Shown: piece after piece, positions 6,176 through 63,723 of the stretch
How positions within the stretch are numbered: the stretch's first letter is position 1
Layout: the number at the start of each line of letters is the position of its first letter
From: Malacoraja senta
Lineage: Eukaryota
NCBI GenBank assembly: GCA_038087875.1
Contig: JAXLNO010003796.1
Span: 558,001-622,000, forward strand
DNA length: 64,000 nucleotides
Direction of reading: 5' to 3'
The notes under the pieces: model-generated
Told to the model about the DNA's origin: nothing
The model's database searches: none
The model's input: the letters and a program-made list of their open reading frames with translations, nothing else
Translations under genes and position numbers: made by a program

Positions 6176-6737
6176 TTCTCGGAGATGCACACTTCCTGAC
6201 GTGATTGAATAAAAGCAGAATAAGATACCCTGGGTGTCCTTGATTGCAAGAAAATAATATTTGGATTGGCATGACCTCAGGACTGGGGAAAATTAAAAGA
6301 TTTTGACTAGTTTTGAATTATAATGGTTTGCGTTCAAGTAATAACATCATTGATAAATGCTCCATCAACATTTCCCTCTTCTTCTGAAGCTAATTTTGAG
6401 CTCATGGGAGAATTCATAACCTTTATTGTCATGTGTACAATTATGTTGAATTTACATGGCAAGAGATAAACCTGTCATATTAATATAGAAAAGATGCTGA
6501 GCATCTGTGTATACCAGTATATTAAAAGTGGTGTGTTAAAATTATGGCAATAATTGAACTTAATACAGGATTCATAGAGCTAAACCCTCTACATATACTG
6601 GGTGTATGTGTTCAGGTATATACAATGGGAGGGGCAGGGGGGGTGTAATATTATTCAAGCATTCCTGCACAGTTCTGAAGGATAAATGATTGTCACTGTG
6701 AAAACATTTTTGAGACCTGTTTTTACACATAAGTTGT

Positions 6738-7781
6738 CATTCCTCGACTTCCTCATCCACAGACCACAGTCTGTCCGTATTGGTGGAAATGTATCATCCT
6801 CGATAACAATCAGCACGGGAGCACCTCAAGGCTGCGTGCTCAGCCCCCTGCTTTACTCACTCTATACTCATGACTGAGTAGCCGGTCATAGTGCGAACTC
6901 CATCATCAAGTTCACCGACGACACCACTATTGTGGGACCAATCACTGATGGTGACGAGTCAGAGTATAGAAGTGAGATCGACCGATTGACCAAATGGTGC
7001 CAGCACAATAACCTGGCTCTCAACACCAGCAAAACCAAGGAACTGATTGTGGACTTTGGAAGGGGTAGGATAGGGACACATAATCCCGCTTATATCAACG
7101 GGATGATGGTGGAAAGGGTCAAGAACTTCAAATTCCTGGGCGTGCATATTTCCGAAGATTTTTTCTGTTCCCAGCGCACTGATGCAATTATAAAGAAAGC
7201 ACATCAGCGCCTCTACTTCCTGAGAAGATTACGGAGTCGGTATGTCAAAGAGGACTCTCTCGAACTTCTACAGGTGCACAGTAGAGAGCATGCTGACTGG
7301 TTGCATCGTGGCTTGGTTCAGCAACTTGAGCGTCCAGGAGCGGAAAAGAATGCAGAAAGTTGTGACCACTGCCCAGTCCATCATTGGCTCTGACCTCCCC
7401 ACCATCGAAGGGATCTATCGCAGTTGTTGCCTCAAAAAGGCTGCCAGCATCATCAAGGACCCACACCATCCTGGCCACACACTCATCTCTCCGTTGCCAT
7501 CAGGCAGAAGGTACTGGAGCCTGAAATCTGGTACATCCAGGTTCATGAACAGCTTCTTTCCCACAGCCATCAGGCTATTAAACTCGCCATCAAACAAACT
7601 CTGAACTATAACAGCCTATTGCACTTTATCTGTTTATTTATGTGTATATATATGGTCAATGCTATATAGACACACTGAACTGTTCTGTATTTATGCTTAC
7701 ACTGTTGTGCTGCAGCAAGCAAGAATGTCATTGTCCTATCTGGGACACATGACAATAAACTCACTTGACTTGACTTGACTT
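6738..7781 (+). mobile_element. Rex1/Babar LINE, 5'-truncated RT C-terminal half with 3' UTR
   Basis: Broken ORF: [14 protein letters not shown]...[52 protein letters not shown]. Ends in aataaa plus a (cttga)n tail. Confidence 0.9.
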
Positions 7782-42175: not shown

Positions 42176-42323
42176 NNNNNNNNNNNNNNNNNNNNNNNNN
42201 NNNNNNNNNNNNNNNNNNNNNNNNNNNNNNNNNNNNNNNNNNNNNNNNNNNNNNNNNNNNNNNNNNNNNNNNNNNNNNNNNNNNNNNNNNNNNNNNNNNN
42301 NNNNNNNNNNNNNNNNNNNNNNN
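42176..42323. other. Assembly gap (148 N)
   Basis: Run of n characters. Confidence 1.
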
Positions 42324-50607: not shown

Positions 50608-51464
50608 ATATCAGATGAATATTTTAACTTATTGTTTACATTTGACTTTATTTTCTCATTCTCCATTACTAACTTACAATTAATTAATGAAATCTGGAAT
50701 GGATATGTTGAGAACAATTATTGGAAATCAACATCTGAATAGTAATGAAACAAATAGGGAATGTTTACAGATGGGTTCAACAACAATCAGACTGCCTGCA
50801 AAAAGACAACCAAACCCGTATTGGCATTACTAAGTTAAAATGTTGTCAGTGTTTTGGTTACATTGCAATTGGATGTGTATATTCTTAACATGAATGGATT
50901 TAAGGCCAATGATGGACAGATTTGATCAAAGCCGTTTATGGTACCAGCAACTAGGCCAGATACCAGTCATCATCCTCTGAAATAAAGTGCATAGTTAGCA
51001 ATTATTAAGTTGCTAAATTCCTTTAAAAGCCATTTATGAGTGCCCGAAAGGACTTCCAGTTGTTCCGAATGAATTAATCCTTCATGCTCATCCTATATTG
51101 GTTGACTCTTCATTTTGTATACTTCAATTAAACCAACCATTTTGTTCCAAAGAAAACAATATCAGTTCCTCTCCAAAAATATGTTGGTCCTGTCCCAGCT
51201 ATATCATAATCAGGGAGTAATAGAAACATACGGCAATAACCTACATATTGGCCCACTGAGGCCACTCCAACCATCACCATCCACGTACACTAATTCTATT
51301 TTACACTCACCGCATTCCCATCAAGTCCCCACTCAGTCTATCCACCCACACACATGGGGCAATATAAAATGGCCAGTTAACCTACAAAGCCATACCGTTG
51401 TGGTAATTTACTCGGTGTTCGCTCTAATACTCTCATAATACTGTGTGCCTGACGTTGAACTAAC

Positions 51465-51581
51465 CTGCATTGACGATTGCATCAATTTCCAGCTTTGTGA
51501 TATCCTCTTGCAAGAGTGAAACCTTTTCATTCAGAACATCACTCTTCTTGTAATGTGTTCTTGGCTGTTTCAGATTTTCGC
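51465..51581 (-). CDS. MACROD1: ADP-ribose glycohydrolase MACROD1, internal coding exon (probable exon 3, 117 nt, phase 1-1)
   Basis: Acceptor ttttggtttgCAG, donor GCAG|GTTAGT. Encodes (G)ENLKQPRTHYKKSDVLNEKVSLLQEDITKLEIDAIVNA(A), the start of the macro domain. FLRT1 lies antisense in the next intron, as in mammals. Confidence 0.9.
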
Positions 51582-51959
51582 CTGCAAACCAAAACATAAA
51601 AAAATTGGAATAAAGTAAAATCATAACTGTGTGTAAATCTGGATTTTCAATTATTTTCTGAATGAAAGACACTTTCTGACAGAAACACCAAGAAAATGAT
51701 CGCTGGCCTCAATCTCCATAGAACATACGATAAACAGTACAACACTTTGGCGCACCATGTCTGCACCAACTACGATGCCATGTCTGACCCAACTATGATA
51801 TCACACCGTATTGGGGACAGATCTCAAACAATGATGAGACACAGCTCAGAAAGGAGATGGAGAGCTAAGTAGCGTAGTTTTAAGGCAATAAGCTCTCCCT
51901 CAATCTCATCAAAAGAAAGGAGCTGGTCACCGATTTCAGAAAGCGAGGTGCTTGGCAAG

Positions 51960-52445
51960 GTAACTGCTCTACCCAAGATGCAAGATGCAGCAGAGTCATG
52001 GACACAGCCCAAATCATCACAAAATCAGCCTTCCAAATCCCTGTTCCCAATTGACTCCATTTACATATTGATACTTCATGCTACCTTGGGAAAGCAGCCA
52101 ACATTATCAAAGACCACACACACCATTGCCATTCTCTCTTTAACCCTCCCCTGCCAATCAGATGATACAAAAGCATGAAAGCATGAACCCCCATATTCAG
52201 GAACATCTTCTTCTCCCCTGTTAACAGATTTTTGAATGGACCTCATATTCTAAGGATATATTCCAGATCTTCTAATCTACCTTGTTTTAGTGTTGCAATT
52301 TTTTTGTCTGCACTTTTTCTATAGCTGGAACACTATATTCTGCACTCTGTTTCCTTTCTGTTCATGCATATACTCATATACTCATATATGGTCTGAAAAC
52401 TTTTTTGAATCTCGATACACATGACAATGATAAACCAATACCAAA
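51960..52445 (+). mobile_element. Rex1/Babar 3' end inside an old minus-strand CR1 (51715-52770)
   Basis: LGKQPTLSKTTH / FRNIFFSPVNRFLN motifs and a catgacaatgataaacc end. Antisense CR1 motifs follow (gaactgcagacaatactccaaatgtg). Confidence 0.65.
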
Positions 52446-53479
52446 AAAGTCCAGCGACCAGAACTGCAGACAATACTCCAAATGTGATCTAACCAAGTTT
52501 TATATAAGTGCAACACGATTTCCAAACTTCATTACCTAATGCCCCCAACGAATGATGGTAAGCATGCTGTACACCCTTACCAGCATATTCGCTTATGTTG
52601 CTAGTATCAGGGAGCTTTAGACTTCAACCTTAAGATCCTTTTGAACCTCTAAGGGTCCTGCCATTAATTATAAACTTCCATCTTGCATTTGACCTCCCAA
52701 AATGCATCAAGACACACTCATCTGGATTAAACTCCAACTTCATTTCCCTACCCAAAATTTCCATCTGATCTATACAAAATTTCCAACTGACAAAGTGAAA
52801 ATCGAACTGGCTTATTTGTTTTCCATGAATTTTGCCAGGTTTTGGTACCTCCCAAAATATTTAAAAGTATATAGCACTTTTAAAATGGAAGGCAACTAAA
52901 CTATTTGTATATAGCAGGGACCAGAAACACGTAAATCAAAAGAACATCGGTGTATAACAACTTTTGCACAAGTTTTCAGTAAGTGCCTAAAAACGTGAGC
53001 GGTGTGCATACATTTATTCCAAGTAGAAAATGAGACACCCACCATGTGCTTTGGCTCCTTCATAGGCAATGATAATGCAGGAATCAACTGCTGGTAAATT
53101 GGATTGATATTTGATGGTCGGCATGCACAAGGTGAGCCAAAAGGTCTGCTTCTATGCTTGTTTTCTCTATTACTGTATTTGCAAAGAGTGCAGAACTCAC
53201 GATTACCAGAGCACCTTCTCTAAATACCTATAGATTTACTAGACAAACTAATAAAGAAGCAATTCTTTAAAAAAGAACCACTTTAGAACTGTACTCCATC
53301 TACTGTACTCCATCCAAGGGTACCTTTGGAGTGTGAAGTGAAGTGAAGTGAGTTTATTGTCATGTGTCCCTGATAGGACAATGAAATTCTTGCTTTGCTT
53401 CAGCACACAGAACATAGTAGGCATTTACTACAAAACAGATCAATGTGTCCATATACCATAATATAAATATATACACACA

Positions 53480-54030
53480 TAGATACATAGATACATAGAA
53501 AATAGGTGCAGGAGTAGGCCATTCGGCCCTTCGAGCCTGCACCGCCATTCAATATGATCATGGCTGATCATCCAACTCAGTATCCCGTACCTGCCTTCTC
53601 TCCATACCCCCTGATCCCTTTAGCCACGAGGGCCACATCTAACTCCCTCTTAAATATAGCCAATGAACTGGCCTCAACTACCCTCTGTGGCAGAGAGTTC
53701 CAGAGATTCACCACTCTCTGTGTGAAAAAGTTTTTCCTCATCTCGGTCTTAAAGGATTTCCCCCTTATCCTTAAGCTGTGACCCCTTGTCCTGGACTTCC
53801 CCAACATCGGGAACAATCTTCCTGCATCTAGCCTGTCCAACCCCACAAGAATTTTGTACGTTTCTATAAGATCCCCTCTCAATCTCCTAAATTCTAGCGA
53901 GTATAAGCCAAGTCTATCCAGTCTTTCTTCATATGAAAGTCCTGACATCCCAGGAATCAGTCTGGTGAACCTTCTCTGCACTCCCTCTATGGCTATAATG
54001 TCCTTCCTCAGATTTGGAGACCAAAACTGT
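53480..54030 (-). mobile_element. Young CR1 LINE, 5'-truncated, inserted into a (cttca)n-tailed element
   Basis: 153-aa uninterrupted ORF2 C-terminus nearly identical to 17157-17610. cacacat is duplicated at both ends. The host tail gtgaagtgaagtgagtttattgtcatgtg starts near 53333. Confidence 0.95.
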
Positions 54031-56409
54031 ACGCACACATGAATAAATAAACTGATAAAGTGCAGATAACAGATAATGGGTTATTAATAATCAGAGTTTT
54101 GTCCAAGTTTTGTCCGAGCCTGGTTACCTAGGCAATAAACACAATTACGTGATTTATTTTTCCCAATAATGTAATGCATGGAATCCACCACATGGAACAT
54201 AGTGCTCTCCAATATCAGCCTATTACATTGTCCATATAACATCTCTACTCTTTATGAACAATTTCTGAAGGAGTAGTTTTTAAAATTTCAAGGACTGTCA
54301 AGTCTCCTGATTATGACAGTAATTTCAACCACATCTGAATGATTCTTCATGGTTTCTGTTAAACCTTCCATAAGCAATTTGATCAAATTAATAATGTCTT
54401 TACAAGCATTTATGTAACGCTTACCAAACTCTGGAAACCTATTGATCATTACCAAGTGATACAAATGGATCTGTAAGCATTTTGCATTTCATTAAATAGT
54501 TTAATAACATTCTAATGGCTTATGACATTTATGTAAAATTCCTTTTCTTTAGTGCGAGTGCAATAAAAGTTCATTTGAACAGTTATACAAATATTAGAAT
54601 GGGTGCCAGGAATAAATATTAGAATTTATTCCTGAGGTATTTTAAAAATGAAATAGAGATTCCTTGATGTTGAATTAATGAGACTGTATTCTAAATCATG
54701 TTAATTTCATGTTAATCCACTTTCAACACTTTCTACTGTACTTGGACAAAAGTGTTACAAGGGAGTCCAGTGAAGATATGCTCAATATGAAGGCATAATT
54801 TTACATACACAATTTCCAGAATAAATATAAAGGGGGAGATAAAAAGATAGCTTGAAAAATTGAAGATAAGAAATATAGAATCAAAATTAATGTAAACAAT
54901 ATTTGTTGTATTGACACTACACCAAGAATATTTTTTCACCTTAACAATATTAAGATTGCTTTTAAATCACATAATAATTATATTTGCAGTGAACGTCGGG
55001 GGTCAACAAAAGCAATCAAATAAATTGTTGTAATCCCTAAGATGATCACCTAATAACTAGTTGAGCACAAATATAAAACATGACAACTTGAACTTCCCCT
55101 TCTGAAGGGGGATGGGGGAGCAACATTATTTCTGAAGGTGTTTCATTTACCAGACAGTAATAGAATGAAAGGTAGAGACCCCAATTTCAATTCAAATAAT
55201 CTGGCCCACAGGCTGACACCAGGAAAACAATTATGATCACAAAAGGTGTTGTATTTTTATCAACATTTTGCCAATGTCTACAGGAAGAAGAAATAGCAAT
55301 TGCCACCTTGGTCTGACCAATATAATTCCAGGGCCATACAATATCAGAGTACACACCTTGTTTGTGATAGACTAGACTGACAACCAAATCATTTCTGACA
55401 CAATTTAAGCGATACAGGTTTTATTTTAACCATTCATAATTATCCAATACTGATATTTTCACTCACTGATATAAAGATACAAATGCAGAAGGCATTCACA
55501 GTTTAGATTGTGCTCAGATTACTACAAAATAAGCCATCATTGTTCCCTTTTTTTAAATGGAGGAAATTAAGTTTGGTATTTGAAAGTATTTGACAGCATA
55601 ATTTTATTTGAAATTTTTAATAGTTTTTATTAGTCCTGGAGATTCAATTAAACACATTTTCAAAAGATTTTGCTAATATATTACTGCCCGCTGCTGACAG
55701 CAACTTATGAACATCCAGATGAGGGAAAATAAGATGGTCAGTAGTTGAATTCTGTGTCTGATTAATAACTGTTTAGGATAAAATGCAGAGTGGGGACAGA
55801 AAGGCTACGTAAGATGCATAGTGACAAAGATTCCATTATAAGTTTCAAGTAGTACCTGGGGCAATTCAGCAGTGAATAAGAATATAAGAAATAGAAGCAG
55901 TAATAGACCATATGACTCCCAAGCCTGTATGTAAGTAATTAATGTAGATTGTTAATGGATGATATTCAGGGACTGATCCTTGTGACAGCTCATTAGTCAC
56001 AGCTTATTATTCAATCCTCGAGCCATACAAATGTAATTTATCCCCAATGCCATGAGGTATTTCCTTGCACAGTAACTTTTTATGTGGTATCTTGTTAAAT
56101 GCCTTTTAGAAACCCAAATACTTTACATGTACGGTTCCTCTTTAACCATCCACAAAAAAATTCCAGAAGTGATTTCCCATTCACACGATTATAATCTTTG
56201 CTGCTTTCAGTTTCAGTTTAGTTTATTGTCACGTGTACCGAGGTACAGTGAAAAGCTTTTTGTTGCGTGCTAACCAGTCAGCAGAAAGATAATACATGAT
56301 TACAATCAATCCATTTACAGTGTGTAGCTACATGATAAAGGAATAACATTTAGTGCAAGGTAAAGCCAGCAAAGTCAGCAAAGGATAGTCCTGTTTCACA
56401 ACAGTATGA

Positions 56410-56487
56410 TTTTCTTACTGTCCTACCATTACTTCCTTAATTGCATCCTTTTCTTACTGTCCTACCATTACTTCCTTAATTGCATCC
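56410..56487. repeat. Perfect 39-bp tandem duplication
   Basis: ttttcttactgtcctaccattacttccttaattgcatcc occurs twice (56410-56448, 56449-56487). Confidence 0.95.
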
Positions 56488-57039
56488 ACGTAGCCTAACT
56501 AGCCTAGTTTCTTGATTTCTGTATACCTTCTTTCTTGAACAAAACCATTATACCTGTGCTTTTTCCAATCTTTTGAGAATCTTCAGAGCTTTGGAAGATC
56601 ATAATCAATACATTCTTTATTTATGTAGTTATTTCTGTTTTAATACACTACGATGCAGGTCAATGGGTCCATGGAACTTGTCAGCCTTTAATCCCATTAT
56701 GTTATATTGTACTTCTTCAATGATGGTTTTGCTTATCCCTTTACTTTCACTGATGTTCTCCTATTGTAGAAAAGCCATTTCTTTAAGTTCCATTATTCTT
56801 TCCATCATATAATTTCCTAATGTTTTATTACACTTGTTTATACTTCTGGTGGCTCCGACTGTCTGATCCTGTATTTTTTTGCCATTTTACTCTTGTGATC
56901 TATTTCTTCCTTTACTTGTGTGGGGAGTGGATGAGAAAGTGGGATAACAGAGAACTCGTGTGAATGGGAGATCGATGGTCGGCATGGACTCGTTGAGCCA
57001 AAGGGCCTGTTCATGCCATATCACTAAACTAAATTAAAG

Positions 57040-57720
57040 AAGGCTGAAGCAATTACCACCATCTTCAGACAGAAGTGAATCTGTTTCCTCCTGAGAATCC
57101 CACCATGACAGAAGACAGTTTTCAGAAATTCATTTAACTCAATGTGATAATTAGAAAAAGACAAGGACAATGGAAACAGCAGAGGTAGGGGGGACAGACA
57201 ACATTTTGGCTGTAGTACTGAAGATCAGAATTAGATACAACACCAGTCAAGCTGTTCCACTATAATTACAACAATGGCATCAGCCAACCATGTGGAAAAT
57301 TGCCCACATATGCCCTATCCATAAAAAGCTGGACCTAACCAAACATTTGGTCCTCTGTCTAATCCCAATCACCATTAAAATAATGGAATATGTCATTGAC
57401 AATGCTATCAAATGGCACTTACTCACCAACAATATGCTCACAGATGACCATTTTGAGGCTTTATCACAGCTTTGGTCCAAACATGAAACAAAGAATTGAA
57501 TTCCTGAGCTGAGGTGAAAGAGTTTACCGTTAACAGGAAGGTCGCATTTAGTTAAGTGTAACATCATGGAGTTCTGGTAAAATTGAAATCAATGGGGCTC
57601 AAGAAGAAAGTACCTAATGTGTTGGGAGCCATATCTCGCATAAAGAAAGCTGATTGTGGTTGTTGGATGTTAACTATCCCAGTCCTACAACATCACTGCA
57701 AGAGTTTGGACTAGTTTTCT
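57040..57720 (+). mobile_element. Old CR1/L2-group LINE RT fragment
   Basis: PTMWKIAHICPIHKK...IKIMEYVIDNAIKWHLLTNNMLTD is the RT N-terminal motif. Confidence 0.7.
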
Positions 57721-58634
57721 AGGGAGCAAATAATTTTCATATATTTTATAAATAACCTGACTTCCATCATATGATTATAAGCATTTGTTCCTTCTTCCAA
57801 CCGCCGTGACAACTAAATCCCGCAAAATAATTTGAAGAGACCCCAGTCCGGTATCCTGTGTTCCCATGTCTGCACAAATCAGCATTATGTTACTTGGTAG
57901 TTCAGCCTAGCGTGAAACAGGATGGTGGAAAAGTGAGGATTCAGTGGATCTGGACAACTAACTTTATCAAGTGACATGTGATTGTAAAACAATAATCAAG
58001 TGACACATAATTGTAAGTAAATTCAATCTAAAGCAAATGGATGATTTAGAAAGTTTATTGGTTTTGTTAGAAAATCAAAAACTATTGTTAATTAATGACA
58101 TGGCAGACTGCAAGCTTCTACAGAAATTGTCATGTAATAGCAAGGCTACTAGATTGGTGGGCAGGAGAAGAATACAAAACTGAAGAATAGAATACATATC
58201 GAAGTGAAAGAATGACATAGGGAAGATTGCCAGATGGCACGGTGTTCTGACATAAATGGTTGAAATTGGGTTGATTCTCCCCAAAAAATATGATCTGGGA
58301 AGGATTTGAAAACTGGTAATAATATTTTATTAGAATTAAAGGGTCTTTCTCAATCCTTTAATATGGAATATAAAATATTTTTTAAAGAGAGGTAATAAAG
58401 AATGTTAAAGTGAGAAGCTAAGAAACAATCTCTTTACTCTCAATAAAATATGGATAAATGCAATATCTAGTATCATATACTGTCAAAGAGCTTAAAGGTC
58501 CCATATTCCCTCCTTATTTCTAATTGAAGTTCTCACAGATCACACAGGACGTTTTATCTGTCCTCTATGAACGGCATGTACATTGAATGACACAGGACTC
58601 CTGCTTCCAATGTATATTTAATGTCCGCTAGTAT

Positions 58635-59541
58635 AGGGGGGTTGCACGTAAGGTCACCGGGTCATAGGGCTTGACGCACGGAGCCGCTCAATCCATCTGG
58701 AGGACATCCGTCACTTCCGGTATATGTTATTAATACAAGAAACGCGTACTTTCCTACCTGTTAAAAGCCGCCAAAATGTTGAATTTTTTCGCTGTAAAAA
58801 AGTGTGGAAGTCGGGGTAGTGAGAGACATGTACCCAACTTCAGAATTCAAAAAGGGAAGCGAAATGAAGGTAAAGAGAAGCGACAGCTGAAGGGACAACA
58901 GCAGCTAAACTGCTTGGCGGACATTGGCCGTGCAGATATCGGAATTGGAAATATTGGGAATTATCGTGTTTGCTCACTGCATTTCATCAACAGTATGGCA
59001 TTATTTGTGTTTTTTCTTAATTCCTTTGGTATCTAAAAAGTCTCAGAAGTGATAAATCTGGCTGTAAATTTTGCTTCAGAGGCGTTTTCTTTTTGTATGT
59101 AAAAACCCACTTGAGAACCATGGGCGATTTTAAAATTTTACAGCCAGATTTATCACTTCTGAAACTTTTTAGATGCCAAAGGAATCAAGAAAAAAACACA
59201 AATAATGCCTTAGTTGATGAAATGCAGTGAGCAAACGGCCAAGGTACGCCAAGCACTCTCTGGCTGTTGTTGTCCCTTCAGCTCTCGCTTCTATCTACCG
59301 TCATTTCTCCTCACTTTTGGAATTCTGAGGAAGGCTAAATGTCTCTCACGCTTATCCCGATTTCCATAATTATTTACAGCGCAAAAATTGACAATTTCGT
59401 CGGGTTTTAACGGGTCCGCTACGCTGGAAACAATGGTAAGTGCTTGCCTTCAGTTCATCGCGTGTACTCCACTTGGCGTAGCGTAGCAACACTTGGCGTG
59501 GCGTTTCATGGGTCGTGACCCGACTGCCGTGAAACCTCCCT
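58635..59541. mobile_element. Fold-back non-autonomous DNA transposon with THAP-coding arms (PIF/Harbinger group, ISL2EU-like)
   Basis: TIRs AGGGGGGTTGCACG / CGTGAAACCTCCCT flanked by AT (within TATA) on both sides. Long inverted arms around an ~60-bp spacer (59073-59131). The arms translate to a THAP domain (NFCAV..., GRAD...YRVCSLHF). Confidence 0.75.
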
Positions 59542-59610
59542 ATAAATATACTGCACACTTGAGTAAAGCAAGTGTAGGGCTATTGTTAAAATTACATAAA
59601 ATTACATAGA

Positions 59611-59728
59611 AAGGTTGACACAAAAAGCTGGAGTAACTCAGCGGGACATGCATTCTGGAGTAAAGGAATGATGTTTCGGGTCGAGATCGATCTTCGATTT
59701 AAACCAGCATCTGCAGTTCCTTCTTACA
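59611..59728. mobile_element. Short Penelope-derived element with internal inversion
   Basis: Minus body (gacacaaaaagctggagtaactcagc...gtttcgggtcgaga) joined to a plus end (tcttcgatttaaaccagcatctgcagttccttctta). Confidence 0.7.
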
Positions 59729-60034
59729 CATAGACATACGGATGCTGTTCTTGAAAGGCATATGTGGCTCTATCAACAGGAAGGGTGAAAATGTGTGGAA
59801 TGTCAAGTGTCAAGCGTGTCAAGTGTTTAATTGTGATATGCTCCGAAACGGAACAATGACATTCTTACTTGCAGCAGCAAGAATGTAAATTAATATGAAC
59901 AAAATAAAGGACTGCATAAATGATTGATTGCTGAACAACGAGACGTAAAACCAAGCACAAATATTTATTTGCTCAGCAACTAGAATTTGCCAAACAAATT
60001 ATTGCATTGCTTCAGAAAAATGTCAATCAAATAA

Positions 60035-60105
60035 TCCCGGCTATTTCCTGTCACGTGAAAAATACTTGCCCTGAAGGGAAGTGGTGAAAATTGAAGCCGA
60101 TTCTG
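60035..60105 (+). promoter_or_regulatory. Candidate promoter / non-coding first exon of the RILPL2 copy
   Basis: GTCACGTGA E-box (60050-60058), ETS-like TTTCCTG and GGAAGT (60077-60082), donor CTG|GTAAGG at 60105/60106. Confidence 0.4.
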
Positions 60106-60277
60106 GTAAGGAGTGTAACGAAAATGCGAGACTATTTATTTTGCAGGTTTATTAATTAAACTCAAAGGGTGAAACTTTACTTAAGCCTATCATTTGCGAA
60201 ATAGTAATTCTTCATCTTTAGATGGTCAGTTGGTTTTATTTCCATTTTCAGTCAACGGGAATTGGCACCACAGGTCG

Positions 60278-60847
60278 ATGGAGGAATCGAATCCCGCATC
60301 AGCATTTGACAAAGATCCATTCGAGCTCACAGCTGAACATGTCTACGATATTTCTTACATTATTGGCCGCGATTTAATGAAGCTCGGCAGCTCAGAAGAT
60401 TGTAACATGGTTTCCGAGTTGCAATATAAGATAATCAGAGTCCTAGAAATGCTGGAGTGTCTGGTGAACAAGCACAATTTAACGGTGGAAACATTGAAAA
60501 TTGAAAGCGACAATCTAAGAACCGAGACGGAAAGACTTAACAGAGAACTTCAACAGGCAGTAAGCAATTCAAAACAAAATGTTGGGTCGGATAAACTTGT
60601 GGTAGACATCGATGACACAGATCGCCCACGCTTCACGCTGCAGGAACTGCGAGATGTATTGCATGAACGGATTAAACTGAAGGCACAGCTGCATGTTGCA
60701 CAAGAAGAACTTGAGTGCTATAAGAACGGATTAATCGGAACAAAAGAATCTCAAATCGGAGAAATAAATAACTCTGGTCCGAGTAGTGGCAGTGAACAAA
60801 CTATGATTAAAAAGCTATTTTCTCTTAGACATAGAAAACATACTTAA
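60278..60847 (+). CDS. RILPL2: RILP-like protein 2, intronless copy (189 aa), probable retrogene
   Basis: RH1 domain (KDPFELTAEHVYDISYIIGRDLM...LQYKIIRVLEMLECLV), RH2 domain (RPRFTLQELRDVLHERIKLKAQL...QEELECYK) and C-terminal IKKLF, all in one uninterrupted ORF. AATAAA at 61029-61034. Confidence 0.9.
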   Translation: MEESNPASAFDKDPFELTAEHVYDISYIIGRDLMKLGSSEDCNMVSELQYKIIRVLEMLECLVNKHNLTVETLKIESDNLRTETERLNRELQQAVSNSKQNVGSDKLVVDIDDTDRPRFTLQELRDVLHERIKLKAQLHVAQEELECYKNGLIGTKESQIGEINNSGPSSGSEQTMIKKLFSLRHRKHT

Positions 60848-61096
60848 ACCACTTGGACTCGGATGTTCGAAAGATTTGCTGAGCACTCATAGAAAAGAAT
60901 TGTCTAATAGAATTTCAGAACTTTGAAACGACTGTATAGTGTTGTGAGAGAAGAATTTTTGAGGTTTACTTTTTTACACGATTTTGCAGCTTGTAAATTA
61001 TCTGCTTTTTAAAACAAATTGGAGCAGAAATAAAAAGATTGCAAAAAGAAATTGTCACTACTTTTAATAATATAAAACATAGAAACATAGACATAG

Positions 61097-62171
61097 ACCA
61101 GCAAAGAGTAGGAGTAAACGGGTCCTTTTCAGAATGGCAGGCAGTGACTAGTGGGGTACCGCAAGGCTCAGTGCTGGGACCCCAGCTATTTACAATTTAT
61201 ATTAATGATCTGGACGAGGGAATTGAAAGCAACATCTCCAAGTTTGCGGATGACACTAAGCTGGGGGGCAGTGTTAGCTGTGAGGAGGATGCTAGGAGGC
61301 TGCAAGGTGACTTGGATAGGCTGGGTGAGTGGGCAAATGCATGGCAGATGCAGTATAATGTGGATAAATGTGAGGTTATCCACTTTGGTGGCAAAAACAG
61401 GAAAGTAGACTATTATCTAAATGGTGGCCGATTAGGAAAAGGGGTGATGCAACGAGACCTGGGTGTCATGGTACACCAGTCATTGAAAGTAGGCATGCAG
61501 GTGCAGCAGGCAGTGAAGAAAGCGAATGGTATGTTAGCATTCATAGCAAAAGGATTTGAGTATAGGAGCAGGGAGGTTCTACTGCAGTTGTACAGGGTCT
61601 TGGTGAGACCACACCTGGAGTATTGCGTACAGTTTTGGTCTCCAAATCTGAGGAAAGACATTCTTGCCATAGAGGGAGTACAGAGAAGGTTCACCAGATT
61701 GATTCATGGGATGTCAGGACTTTCATATGAAGAAAGACTGGATAGACTCGGCTTGTACTCACTAGAATTTAGAAGATTGAGGGGGGATCTTATAGAAACT
61801 TACAAAATTCTTAAGGGGTTGGACAGGCTAGATGCAGGAAGATTGTTCCCGATGTTGGGAAAGTCCAGGACAAGGGGTCACAGTTTAAGGATTAAGGGGA
61901 AATCCTTTAGGACCGAGATGAGAAAAACATTTTTCACACAGAGAGTGGTGAATCTCTGGAACTCTCTGCCACAGAAGGTAGTTGAGGCCAGTTAATTGGC
62001 TATATTTAAGAGGGAGTTAGATGTGGCCCTTGTGGCTAAAGGGATCAGGGGGTATGGAGAGAAGGCAGGTACAGGATACTGAGTTGGATGATCAGCCATG
62101 ATCATATTGAATGGCGGTGCAGGCTCGAAGGGCCGAATGGCCTACTCCTGCACCTATTTTCTATGTTTCTA
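61097..62171 (+). mobile_element. Young CR1 LINE, 5'-truncated RT half
   Basis: SGVPQGSVLGP, YINDLD, KFADDTKL and RPHLEYCVQFWSP in one frame. A single nonsense codon at 61993-61995 where sister copies have Ser. 3' UTR and ctatgtttcta tail. Confidence 0.95.
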
Positions 62172-63341
62172 GGCAATGGGAAGATTACAATAATTTTATG
62201 GGTTTGGTTATCCAGCCTACAAAAATATAATCTAATACATGCTGGTGTATAAATAATAATTAAACTGACTTATCAGTGTCGATAACATGGACTTGAGAGA
62301 ACTAGACTTGATTCCCTATTCAGTTACCAGAATTAGACAAGGTTATTCTGAAGTTACTTAATCACAAGCCAGCTCATAGGAAAAGATAGTGAAGATTTCT
62401 TATGCAGAGGTCAACTTGGAAATGTAATGTTGATGAAATTGGTTTTATTCTACTTGTCTTTATGTTGTGCATCTTCTGGAGGGAGCGTAGACTACATACT
62501 GAATGGTTTGGGTTCTTCTGTGTAATTTCCACTCTTTATCTCTGATAATAATAATTGTGTTGTCGAAAGCAAATCCAATTTTGTGCTCTGCAAACTTACT
62601 TACTTTTTATTACAGACTCAAGGTCCAGATAAAAGACAAGACATTACATAGCATAAATTGCTTACAAAATCACAATAAATTACACACAAAAGCACAGTAA
62701 ATTACAAAAGCAAAATAACTTGCATACAAAAGCACAATACATGGTTTAAGATCAAGAATTTAAAAAAAATCAGTGTCCTACCACAAAACAACTATACCTA
62801 TGCCTCCACAGCTGGGATTGGTAGCGTGTAGTGCTAAACCTAATGTTTGATAAGGGCAAGATGAGTTCATTTTCAGAGTCATTCACACATGCAAAGATTA
62901 AGCCAGGGCCTTGACCAGGAACACCCAGTTAATTGTTTCCACCATTGCTACCTTTTATTTATGCTTAGGAACTAGTTACAAACTGGTTAGAGTTCTTCCA
63001 GATTTGATGAAAGATCACGGGCATAAATATTAACAGTATTCTTCTCTTTCTACCTTCATCTTTCCCTGCTGAGGATTTCCATCATTTTCTATTTCGTTCT
63101 CTAAATTACTTCCTGATTAAAAGACACTGAGGCAAAATTGTTGACACATCTCTCCCTATTTTCTTCATGCCTCTGTACCGCAACACAGATTTAGTGACTA
63201 CAAAATCTAATCATGGTTAAAATACGATTTTTTTTTAAATTCAGATTTTGAGGATGAAAGAAAATATATGGAATCACTAGTCCTATTTTTTTATTTACCA
63301 TCAAGTTTATTTTCCTTTTAATATCTTAGTCTGTGACTTAC

Positions 63342-63443
63342 CTGCAGTAAAGTCTTTCCATGTTTGAATTTCATCAAGGATAACAAATCTCTCTGCTTTG
63401 TAGTAACTCCGTCTCTCTGTGTGATCACTTTCCTCTAAGTGCT
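63342..63443 (-). CDS. MACROD1: MACROD1 internal coding exon (probable exon 2, 102 nt, phase 1-1)
   Basis: Acceptor ttttattttccttattAAG, canonical donor GCAG|GTAAGT. Encodes xHLEESDHTERRSYYKAERFVILDEIQTWKDFTA(G), matching the recalled MACROD1 segment ...QREEHYFCKDFVRLKKIPTWKEMAKG. Splices in frame to the 51581 exon. Confidence 0.85.
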
Positions 63444-63723
63444 CTTAATAAGGAAAATAAAAGAAAGGCATTTTATTAATTTCTGGCCTTTTTTGGGAGT
63501 TTCATTATTCCGGTTTAGTTTCTTCCACATGTCAGGCTCCCAACAATTATCAGGCAGTCAACTATTTGTTTATTAATTTTTGATAGCACTTTAGTTGCAG
63601 TTAGATGCTCAAAGATAAATTCACATTGTATTTCATGGATCAATATATTCTTCTGGGCTTGACATTACAACTGTGAATAATTTGTACATGGATGGAAGTA
63701 ATTCCCAAAACACTAGATTTTAA

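Follow-up and report, generated by a model that had tools for sequence, protein, structure and literature searches.

An intronless RILPL2 nested antisense in MACROD1 intron 2 of skates, rays and sharks is best explained as an old, working retrogene

In the window, the 64,000-nucleotide stretch of the genome of the skate Malacoraja senta that was analysed here, an uninterrupted RILPL2 reading frame lies between two exons of MACROD1 on the opposite strand, which raises the question of whether it is a working retrogene and whether such a gene stands beside the canonical multi-exon RILPL2 or has taken its place. The explanation that best accounts for the whole of the evidence, to which we assign a probability of roughly 0.8, is that of an old RILPL2 retrogene, free of introns and still working, of which this is the copy in the skate. 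According to this model, the mRNA of a canonical multi-exon RILPL2, residing next to RILPL1 and a SET-domain gene resembling KMT5A, would have been reverse-transcribed, and the cDNA would have entered MACROD1 intron 2 in antisense orientation at a time before the shark-ray divergence, probably even before the chimaeras branched off. Equipped with its own conserved upstream block and AATAAA signal, the retrogene would produce an mRNA about 1 kb long that undergoes no splicing. The predicted product is a dimeric adaptor that would link (phospho-)Rab8/Rab10 membranes to myosin Va, most likely the ancestral job of RILPL2, and that would comprise an RH1 domain, an RH2 coiled coil with the X-cap arginines, the K149-equivalent lysine and the counterparts of F133 and T134, and a tail containing TMIKKLF. 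The features of the locus are collected in Table 1.

Table 1. Coordinates of RILPL2, its flanking elements and its host gene in the window
Feature	Position	Strand	Basis
RILPL2 coding sequence (probable retrogene)	60278..60847	+	ORF, Pfam, solved chains, RILPL2 of relatives
Conserved upstream block, presumed core promoter or distal 5'UTR	59964..60075	+	Alignment with Pristis and Heptranchias; four-species alignment
Approximate RILPL2 transcript, about 0.97 kb, unspliced	60076..61047	+ (strand inferred from ORF and AATAAA)	Contigs
Polyadenylation signal AATAAA	61029..61034	+	182 nt after the stop codon, followed by an A-rich stretch
MACROD1 exon 2 (102 nt)	63342..63443	-	AG/GT boundaries; peptide match to Macro genes of relatives
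MACROD1 intron 2 (11.8 kb), host of RILPL2	51582..63341	-	Boundaries of the two exons
MACROD1 exon 3 (117 nt), start of macro domain	51465..51581	-	AG/GT boundaries; match to 2x47
FLRT1-like single-exon ORF, 678 aa	27937..29973	+	ORF; LRRNT, LRR_8 and fn3 domains

The RILPL2 coding sequence occupies a single exon that runs on the forward strand from an ATG at 60278 to a TAA at 60845-60847 and specifies 189 amino acids with no internal stop codon or frameshift. Pfam places an RH1 domain (PF09744) at residues 21-87 (E 7.7e-12) and a RILP/RH2 domain (PF11461) at residues 120-172 (E 1.2e-16), while the C-terminus bears the MIKKLF motif (...EQTMIKKLFSLR...). Solved RILPL2 chains align to the ORF with E-values from 1e-20, obtained for the RH1 chain 4kp3, to 2e-12, the remaining chains, 7lwb and 6rir, being of RH2. 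The complete, intronless ORF of 189 residues with RH1, RH2 and IKKLF that had been described in the original prediction is thus borne out by the reading frame itself, by Pfam and by the structure matches. All of the best protein matches are RILPL2, none being RILPL1 or RILP, with identities of 96% to Amblyraja (thorny skate) and Leucoraja and 87% to Pristis (sawfish), and the tree separates the window protein from outgroup proteins of 360-450 aa with a support of 100/100.

Mammalian RILPL2 binds the tail of myosin Va through its RH1 domain. Alignment of the window ORF with 6rir and 7lwb equates Arg116, Arg118, Phe119, Thr120 and Lys135 with Arg130, Arg132, Phe133, Thr134 and Lys149 of the human protein, so that all five residues are kept. 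In human RILPL2 these residues make up the X-cap and the switch-1 contact, and mutation of Arg130, Arg132 or Lys149 abolishes or severely weakens the binding of phospho-Rab8a (PMC7139218). Binding of phospho-Rab8/10 and of the myosin Va tail is therefore predicted for the skate protein from the conservation of contact residues. The overall likeness to human RILPL2 (12q24.31; 4kp3, 6rir, 7lwb) extends to a length of about 190-210 aa and to the order of an RH1 domain followed by an RH2 coiled coil, and the window protein, whose identity to bony-vertebrate RILPL2 is 52-56%, also has the X-cap RPRFT, the K149-equivalent lysine and the TxIKKLF tail in common with vertebrate RILPL2.

The host gene is delineated by two exons on the reverse strand. 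The peptide of exon 2 is 96%, 82% and 80% identical to its counterparts in Amblyraja, Pristis and Heptranchias (sevengill shark), respectively, each of which lies within an annotated Macro gene, and it matches human MACROD1 (2x47) weakly (E 0.77) but at the correct place. Exon 3, whose reading phase runs on from exon 2, matches 2x47 with an E-value of 3e-8, in comparison with a poorer 2e-3 for MACROD2. Neither of the macro-domain core motifs, NAAN and GGGVD, was found in the window, since the core exons fall outside it; exon 3 was located with a looser pattern. Because exons 2 and 3 flank the ORF on the opposite strand, RILPL2 is antisense within MACROD1 intron 2, exactly the nesting that had been proposed. 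The FLRT1-like ORF also runs counter to MACROD1, within an intron nearer the 3' end of the host than the one that contains RILPL2, and in Heptranchias a STIP1-like gene is arranged head-to-head with the Macro host gene, as at human 11q13. Together, the nested FLRT1-like ORF in the window and the STIP1-like neighbour in Heptranchias identify the host as MACROD1, which is indeed, as suggested originally, a double host. Nesting of FLRT1 in MACROD1 is common to mammals. Both nested genes have a single coding exon, are intronic and oppose the strand of MACROD1; that of RILPL2, unlike that of FLRT1, has been seen in cartilaginous fishes only and uses a different MACROD1 intron.

Protein searches reveal two classes of RILPL2 in cartilaginous fishes. 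Class A is a close-knit set of proteins that share 60-96% identity with the window protein, with members from skates, sawfish, electric ray, stingrays, mantas, many sharks and Callorhinchus (elephant shark). In Pristis, Amblyraja, Heptranchias, Heterodontus (horn shark) and Scyliorhinus canicula (catshark), class A is a single-exon coding sequence of 564-576 bp that lies antisense in an annotated Macro gene. Class B, which is canonical, multi-exon and 59-62% identical to the window protein, was found among the proteins searched in Heterodontus, Pristiophorus and Heptranchias only, and a search seeded with class B yielded no members beyond these three sharks. In Heterodontus, class B spans 17.7 kb between a RILPL1-like gene (394 aa, RH1 and RILP domains) and a SET-domain gene, and in Heptranchias it spans 6.5 kb and adjoins a SET-domain gene, a setting that corresponds to the canonical KMT5A-RILPL2-RILPL1 neighbourhood of human 12q24.31. 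RefSeq entries of stingrays include N-terminally longer RILPL2 isoforms of 207-260 aa.

Both classes belong to the same family and have in common a chondrichthyan ELQ stretch in the linker, but class B differs from the window gene in being multi-exon, in lying beside a SET-domain gene and in having a tail that is divergent or missing. Indeed, the C-terminal tail of bony-vertebrate RILPL2 is present in every class A protein, whereas in class B it is garbled in Heterodontus, unrelated in Pristiophorus and absent in Heptranchias. The class B proteins (P0016, P0017, P0217 and P0035; L005 13202-13276) exhibit three unrelated C-termini, each without the TxIKKLFSF tail, which could be due to mis-annotated last exons or to real decay. 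Over the aligned RH1/RH2 columns the evolutionary rates of the two classes are equal (Tajima tests not significant), which argues that class B is not simply dead. In contrast to human RILPL2, the window gene has one coding exon, is located in MACROD1 intron 2 and is not in the position of orthology beside RILPL1 and KMT5A, where sharks have class B. Given its locus, it is not the positional ortholog of human RILPL2, even though RefSeq already refers to class A of its relatives as 'RILP-like protein 2'.

The position of the gene provides its minimum age. The DNA surrounding RILPL2 is colinear with that of Pristis over 54544-63656 of the window, and the locus is also colinear with that of the sevengill shark, including MACROD1 exon 2 on the same side and at the same distance. 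Exon 2 is encountered 1.8-3.6 kb past the RILPL2 stop codon in the window, Amblyraja, Pristis and Heptranchias. The same position and colinearity in rays and sharks point to one insertion that is older than the split between them, which is estimated, rather than computed here, to have occurred more than 300 million years ago. The RILPL2 retrogene is therefore old, being neither young nor lineage-specific, and the question of whether the MACROD1-intronic copy is syntenic in sharks and rays can be answered positively for five genera with an annotated Macro host.

The region that is conserved between species extends well beyond the ORF, from 59964 (Pristis, 83.5% identity) or 59969 (Heptranchias, 74%) to 61053. 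Upstream, a strongly conserved stretch contains an E-box, CACGTG, at 60052-60057, which reads CATGTG in the sevengill shark. An upstream ATG at 60222, which is out of frame and overlaps the main start in the skate, is kept in each of the four species (skate, thorny skate, sawfish and sevengill shark), as is an acceptor-like polypyrimidine-CAG at 60241-60252 (TTTCAG at 60247-60252). Downstream, the AATAAA that had been reported about 180 nt after the ORF, with an A-rich stretch behind it, was found 182 nt after the stop codon, and the signal together with about 50 nt around it is invariant in the same four species.

Assembled sequencing contigs delimit a probable transcript within this conserved region. 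Logan contig L002 (952 nt, from a related skate) covers 60084-61029 without gaps at 97% identity, and unspliced contigs from four small runs cover 60076-61008, 60076-61047, 60093-60949 and 60265-60987; these runs represent three related organisms and four studies, with one contig from each run and a pair from one. Next to no contig cover was observed in the four runs on the unique flank 59970-60076, and a search for spliced MACROD1 mRNA in them gave zero contigs on the unique 900 nt at 51100-52000 that include MACROD1 exon 3. Since unique intron DNA is devoid of contigs, the four runs are not whole-genome data. The contigs probably correspond to a discrete unspliced RILPL2 mRNA, the runs, which come from other skate species and give no strand, being presumably RNA. 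Its layout would be a 5'UTR of about 200 nt, the coding sequence and a 3'UTR of about 200 nt. Splicing of a candidate 5'UTR intron (donor at about 60108, acceptor at 60252) was seen in no contig, although contigs drop minor isoforms.

Comparison of the coding sequence with its orthologs indicates purifying selection. The NG86 dN/dS ratio is 0.18 both between the window and Pristis (dS 0.40; bootstrap 0.10-0.29) and between the window and Heptranchias (dS 0.63; bootstrap 0.11-0.28), with all 500 bootstrap replicates below 0.41, and is about 0.11 in relation to Callorhinchus, where dS is saturated. In addition, more than 17 species from both sides of the shark-ray split have an intact class A ORF. 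The ratio of 0.18 and the intact orthologs run contrary to a processed pseudogene, the outcome against which the original prediction had proposed to set a dN/dS comparison.

Within the rajid skates, the pattern of change is different. Replacement and silent changes number 10:4 in Rajidae (omega about 0.7) as opposed to 22:32 among fixed differences to the sawfish (Fisher p 0.069). The codons affected in the window set are 44, 77, 114 and 132; an N-to-I replacement at the position of human N146 is common to Rajidae, and R44M, R77S and P114T are found in the window only, with P114T falling within the otherwise invariant DP(N/D)RPRF. This excess of replacements could be noise, relaxed constraint or adaptation. 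The preponderance of replacements, and the location of the window's private changes at conserved positions, are what might be adduced for a processed pseudogene or a transcribed copy drifting neutrally, its ORF intact by chance. We regard such an explanation as scarcely credible: at the level of the whole clade, it is already contradicted by the number of species with an intact ORF and by dN/dS with its bootstrap, as well as by the conservation of the promoter block and poly(A) signal and by the existence of transcript contigs.

A working gene without introns could nevertheless have arisen in more than one way. The introns of class B in Heptranchias follow approximately amino acids 100 and 150, and the window coding sequence is uninterrupted at both places; likewise, DNA alignment shows the class A coding sequence of Heptranchias to be colinear with class B exons 1-2 across a 1.35-kb intron. 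At least two parental introns are thus precisely absent from class A, with no relic. Moreover, class A (with MACROD1 and STIP1) and class B (with RILPL1 and the SET-domain gene) are located on different chromosome records in both Heterodontus and Heptranchias. It is this combination of relocation and precise absence of introns that argues for retroposition, and, together with the dN/dS of 0.18, it supports the earlier proposal of a retroposed copy kept under selection. No relic of a poly(A) tail and no target-site duplication is recognisable at the locus, as would be expected at such an age, the A-rich stretch after AATAAA being all that is present.

Some resemblance between the two classes persists upstream of the coding sequence. 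By blastn, the class A UTRs have no significant similarity to the class B locus. A profile built from the 330 nt that precede the class A ATG in four species, searched with nhmmer against both strands of the 26.5-kb class B locus, gave a weak best match (E 0.02) at L005 9765-9832; this segment precedes the class B ATG by 169-236 nt and pairs with a part of the profile that precedes the class A ATG by 182-243 nt. In the window, the block at 60033-60090 around the E-box therefore resembles a class B upstream block at the same offset, which is where a homologous block would be expected. This suggests that the mRNA had a long 5'UTR when it was retroposed, or that a downstream promoter travelled on a transcript initiated at an upstream start.

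The same block of about 65 nt, which looks homologous between the classes at 170-240 nt upstream of the ATG and includes sequence upstream of the contig starts, could instead have moved in a DNA-level duplication that included the promoter, the coding introns being lost later and no mRNA being retroposed. We consider this improbable, in that at least two introns would have had to disappear precisely and tracelessly, no other part of the parental neighbourhood has moved, the UTRs are otherwise dissimilar, and a match of this weakness is as easily accommodated by a long parental 5'UTR or a transcript-borne promoter. Retroposition thus remains the preferred origin.

How far before the shark-ray split the retroposition took place can be approached through the chimaeras. 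The RILPL2 of the elephant shark is also intronless; it is on an unplaced scaffold, where two copies occur in a 1865-bp inverted repeat of 99.7% identity (L003 8944-10806 and 18703-20567), one arm of which ends at a gap of 25 N. An ELM2-domain gene model between the arms looks unrelated to the MACROD1 neighbourhood, and no Macro gene and no MACROD1 exon 1 or 2 was detected within 10 kb of the elephant-shark RILPL2. The inverted repeat may be an artefact of the assembly; otherwise, it is a palindromic duplication of recent date.

In the tree, elasmobranch class A and class B each form a clade (support 98/97 and 100/99, respectively), and the base of RILPL2 is a polytomy. Approximately unbiased (AU) tests reject neither a grouping of Callorhinchus with class A (p 0.34) nor a chondrichthyan clade of A and B together (p 0.34), and weakly reject a grouping of Callorhinchus with class B (p 0.033). 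The insertion is likely to predate the chimaera split. As the base is a polytomy, the event may fall on either side of the split from bony vertebrates; had it come first, the retrogene would later have been lost in bony vertebrates.

The distribution of the two classes bears on what became of the parent. Class B is annotated in three sharks and in none of 16 other chondrichthyan species, including eight batoids, six sharks and Callorhinchus, and class A is present in all 16. The lack of annotated class B and the better-kept tail of class A favour replacement of the parent and, on the basis of annotation, the likeliest course is that the retrogene replaced the canonical gene in most cartilaginous fishes, which would require at least three independent losses of the parent. 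The original prediction had allowed for either an extra paralog or a replacement; class A is indeed the only RILPL2 annotated in most of the species, but the three sharks keep both genes.

This retention of both genes, the finding that class B evolves over RH1/RH2 at the rate of class A with no obvious decay there, and the fact that its absence is judged from annotated proteins alone would equally suit a functional retrogene that is an additional paralog, with another role or tissue, alongside a canonical RILPL2 still present but unannotated in skates and rays. We deem this unlikely, as no class B protein is among the matches of the batoids, the additional sharks and Callorhinchus, and as it is class A, not class B, that has kept the ancestral C-terminal tail. 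Returning to replacement in its fullest form, we see an even chance that the 'RILPL2' of most cartilaginous fishes, including all rays and skates, is a retrogene whose age exceeds 300 million years rather than the ortholog of human RILPL2, having taken over the ancestral function from within MACROD1 and perhaps brought along part of the parental promoter or 5'UTR, with a parent that survives in a few sharks and is degenerating in its tail. If true, cartilaginous fishes would offer a natural series leading from 'both genes' to 'retrogene only'.

Orphan retrogenes and the replacement of genes by their retrocopies have been well described before, in human (PMC3548309) and for SYCP1 in amphioxus (PMC5803294). 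In those cases, a single-exon retrocopy keeps the ancestral function and the multi-exon parent vanishes in some lineages. RILPL2 differs in that lineages with both genes, namely the three sharks, stand alongside lineages in which the retrogene alone is annotated, parent loss being here a candidate. A full-text literature search returned no paper that ties RILPL2 to a retrogene origin, an intronless state or MACROD1. The locus thus adds a clear new instance to a phenomenon already known.

Several consequences follow for the interpretation of these genes. It would be wrong with respect to locus and regulation, and possibly expression, to regard the 'RILPL2' of sharks and rays as the one-to-one ortholog of mammalian RILPL2. 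The gene is a rare example of an old retrogene that has remained in the same host intron throughout the elasmobranch radiation, its promoter block and poly(A) site conserved, and sister lineages that keep the parent make it possible to test directly how and when a source gene is replaced by its retrogene. MACROD1 gains a second conserved nested gene; what is known of the mechanism of RILPL2 is unchanged.

The remaining features of the window are mostly repeats. Just past the RILPL2 poly(A) site and in the same orientation lies a 5'-truncated LINE reverse-transcriptase ORF (RVT_1; 61039-61995, +), on which the contig depth is very high in the small runs, and further LINE-related fragments are found at 53580-54080 (-) and about 6686-6874 (+). 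A run of 148 N at 42176-42323 is a gap or masked sequence. Within MACROD1 intron 2, the segments 54544-58512 and 62277-63656 align at 70-77% with the sawfish, and in part with the sevengill shark, reflecting either unusually high non-coding conservation or slow genome evolution. Finally, a very high-copy short repeat occupies 59610-59735, some 350 bp ahead of the RILPL2 transcript, and joints between opposite strands at 59617/59690 in all four runs mark it as hairpin- or SINE-like.
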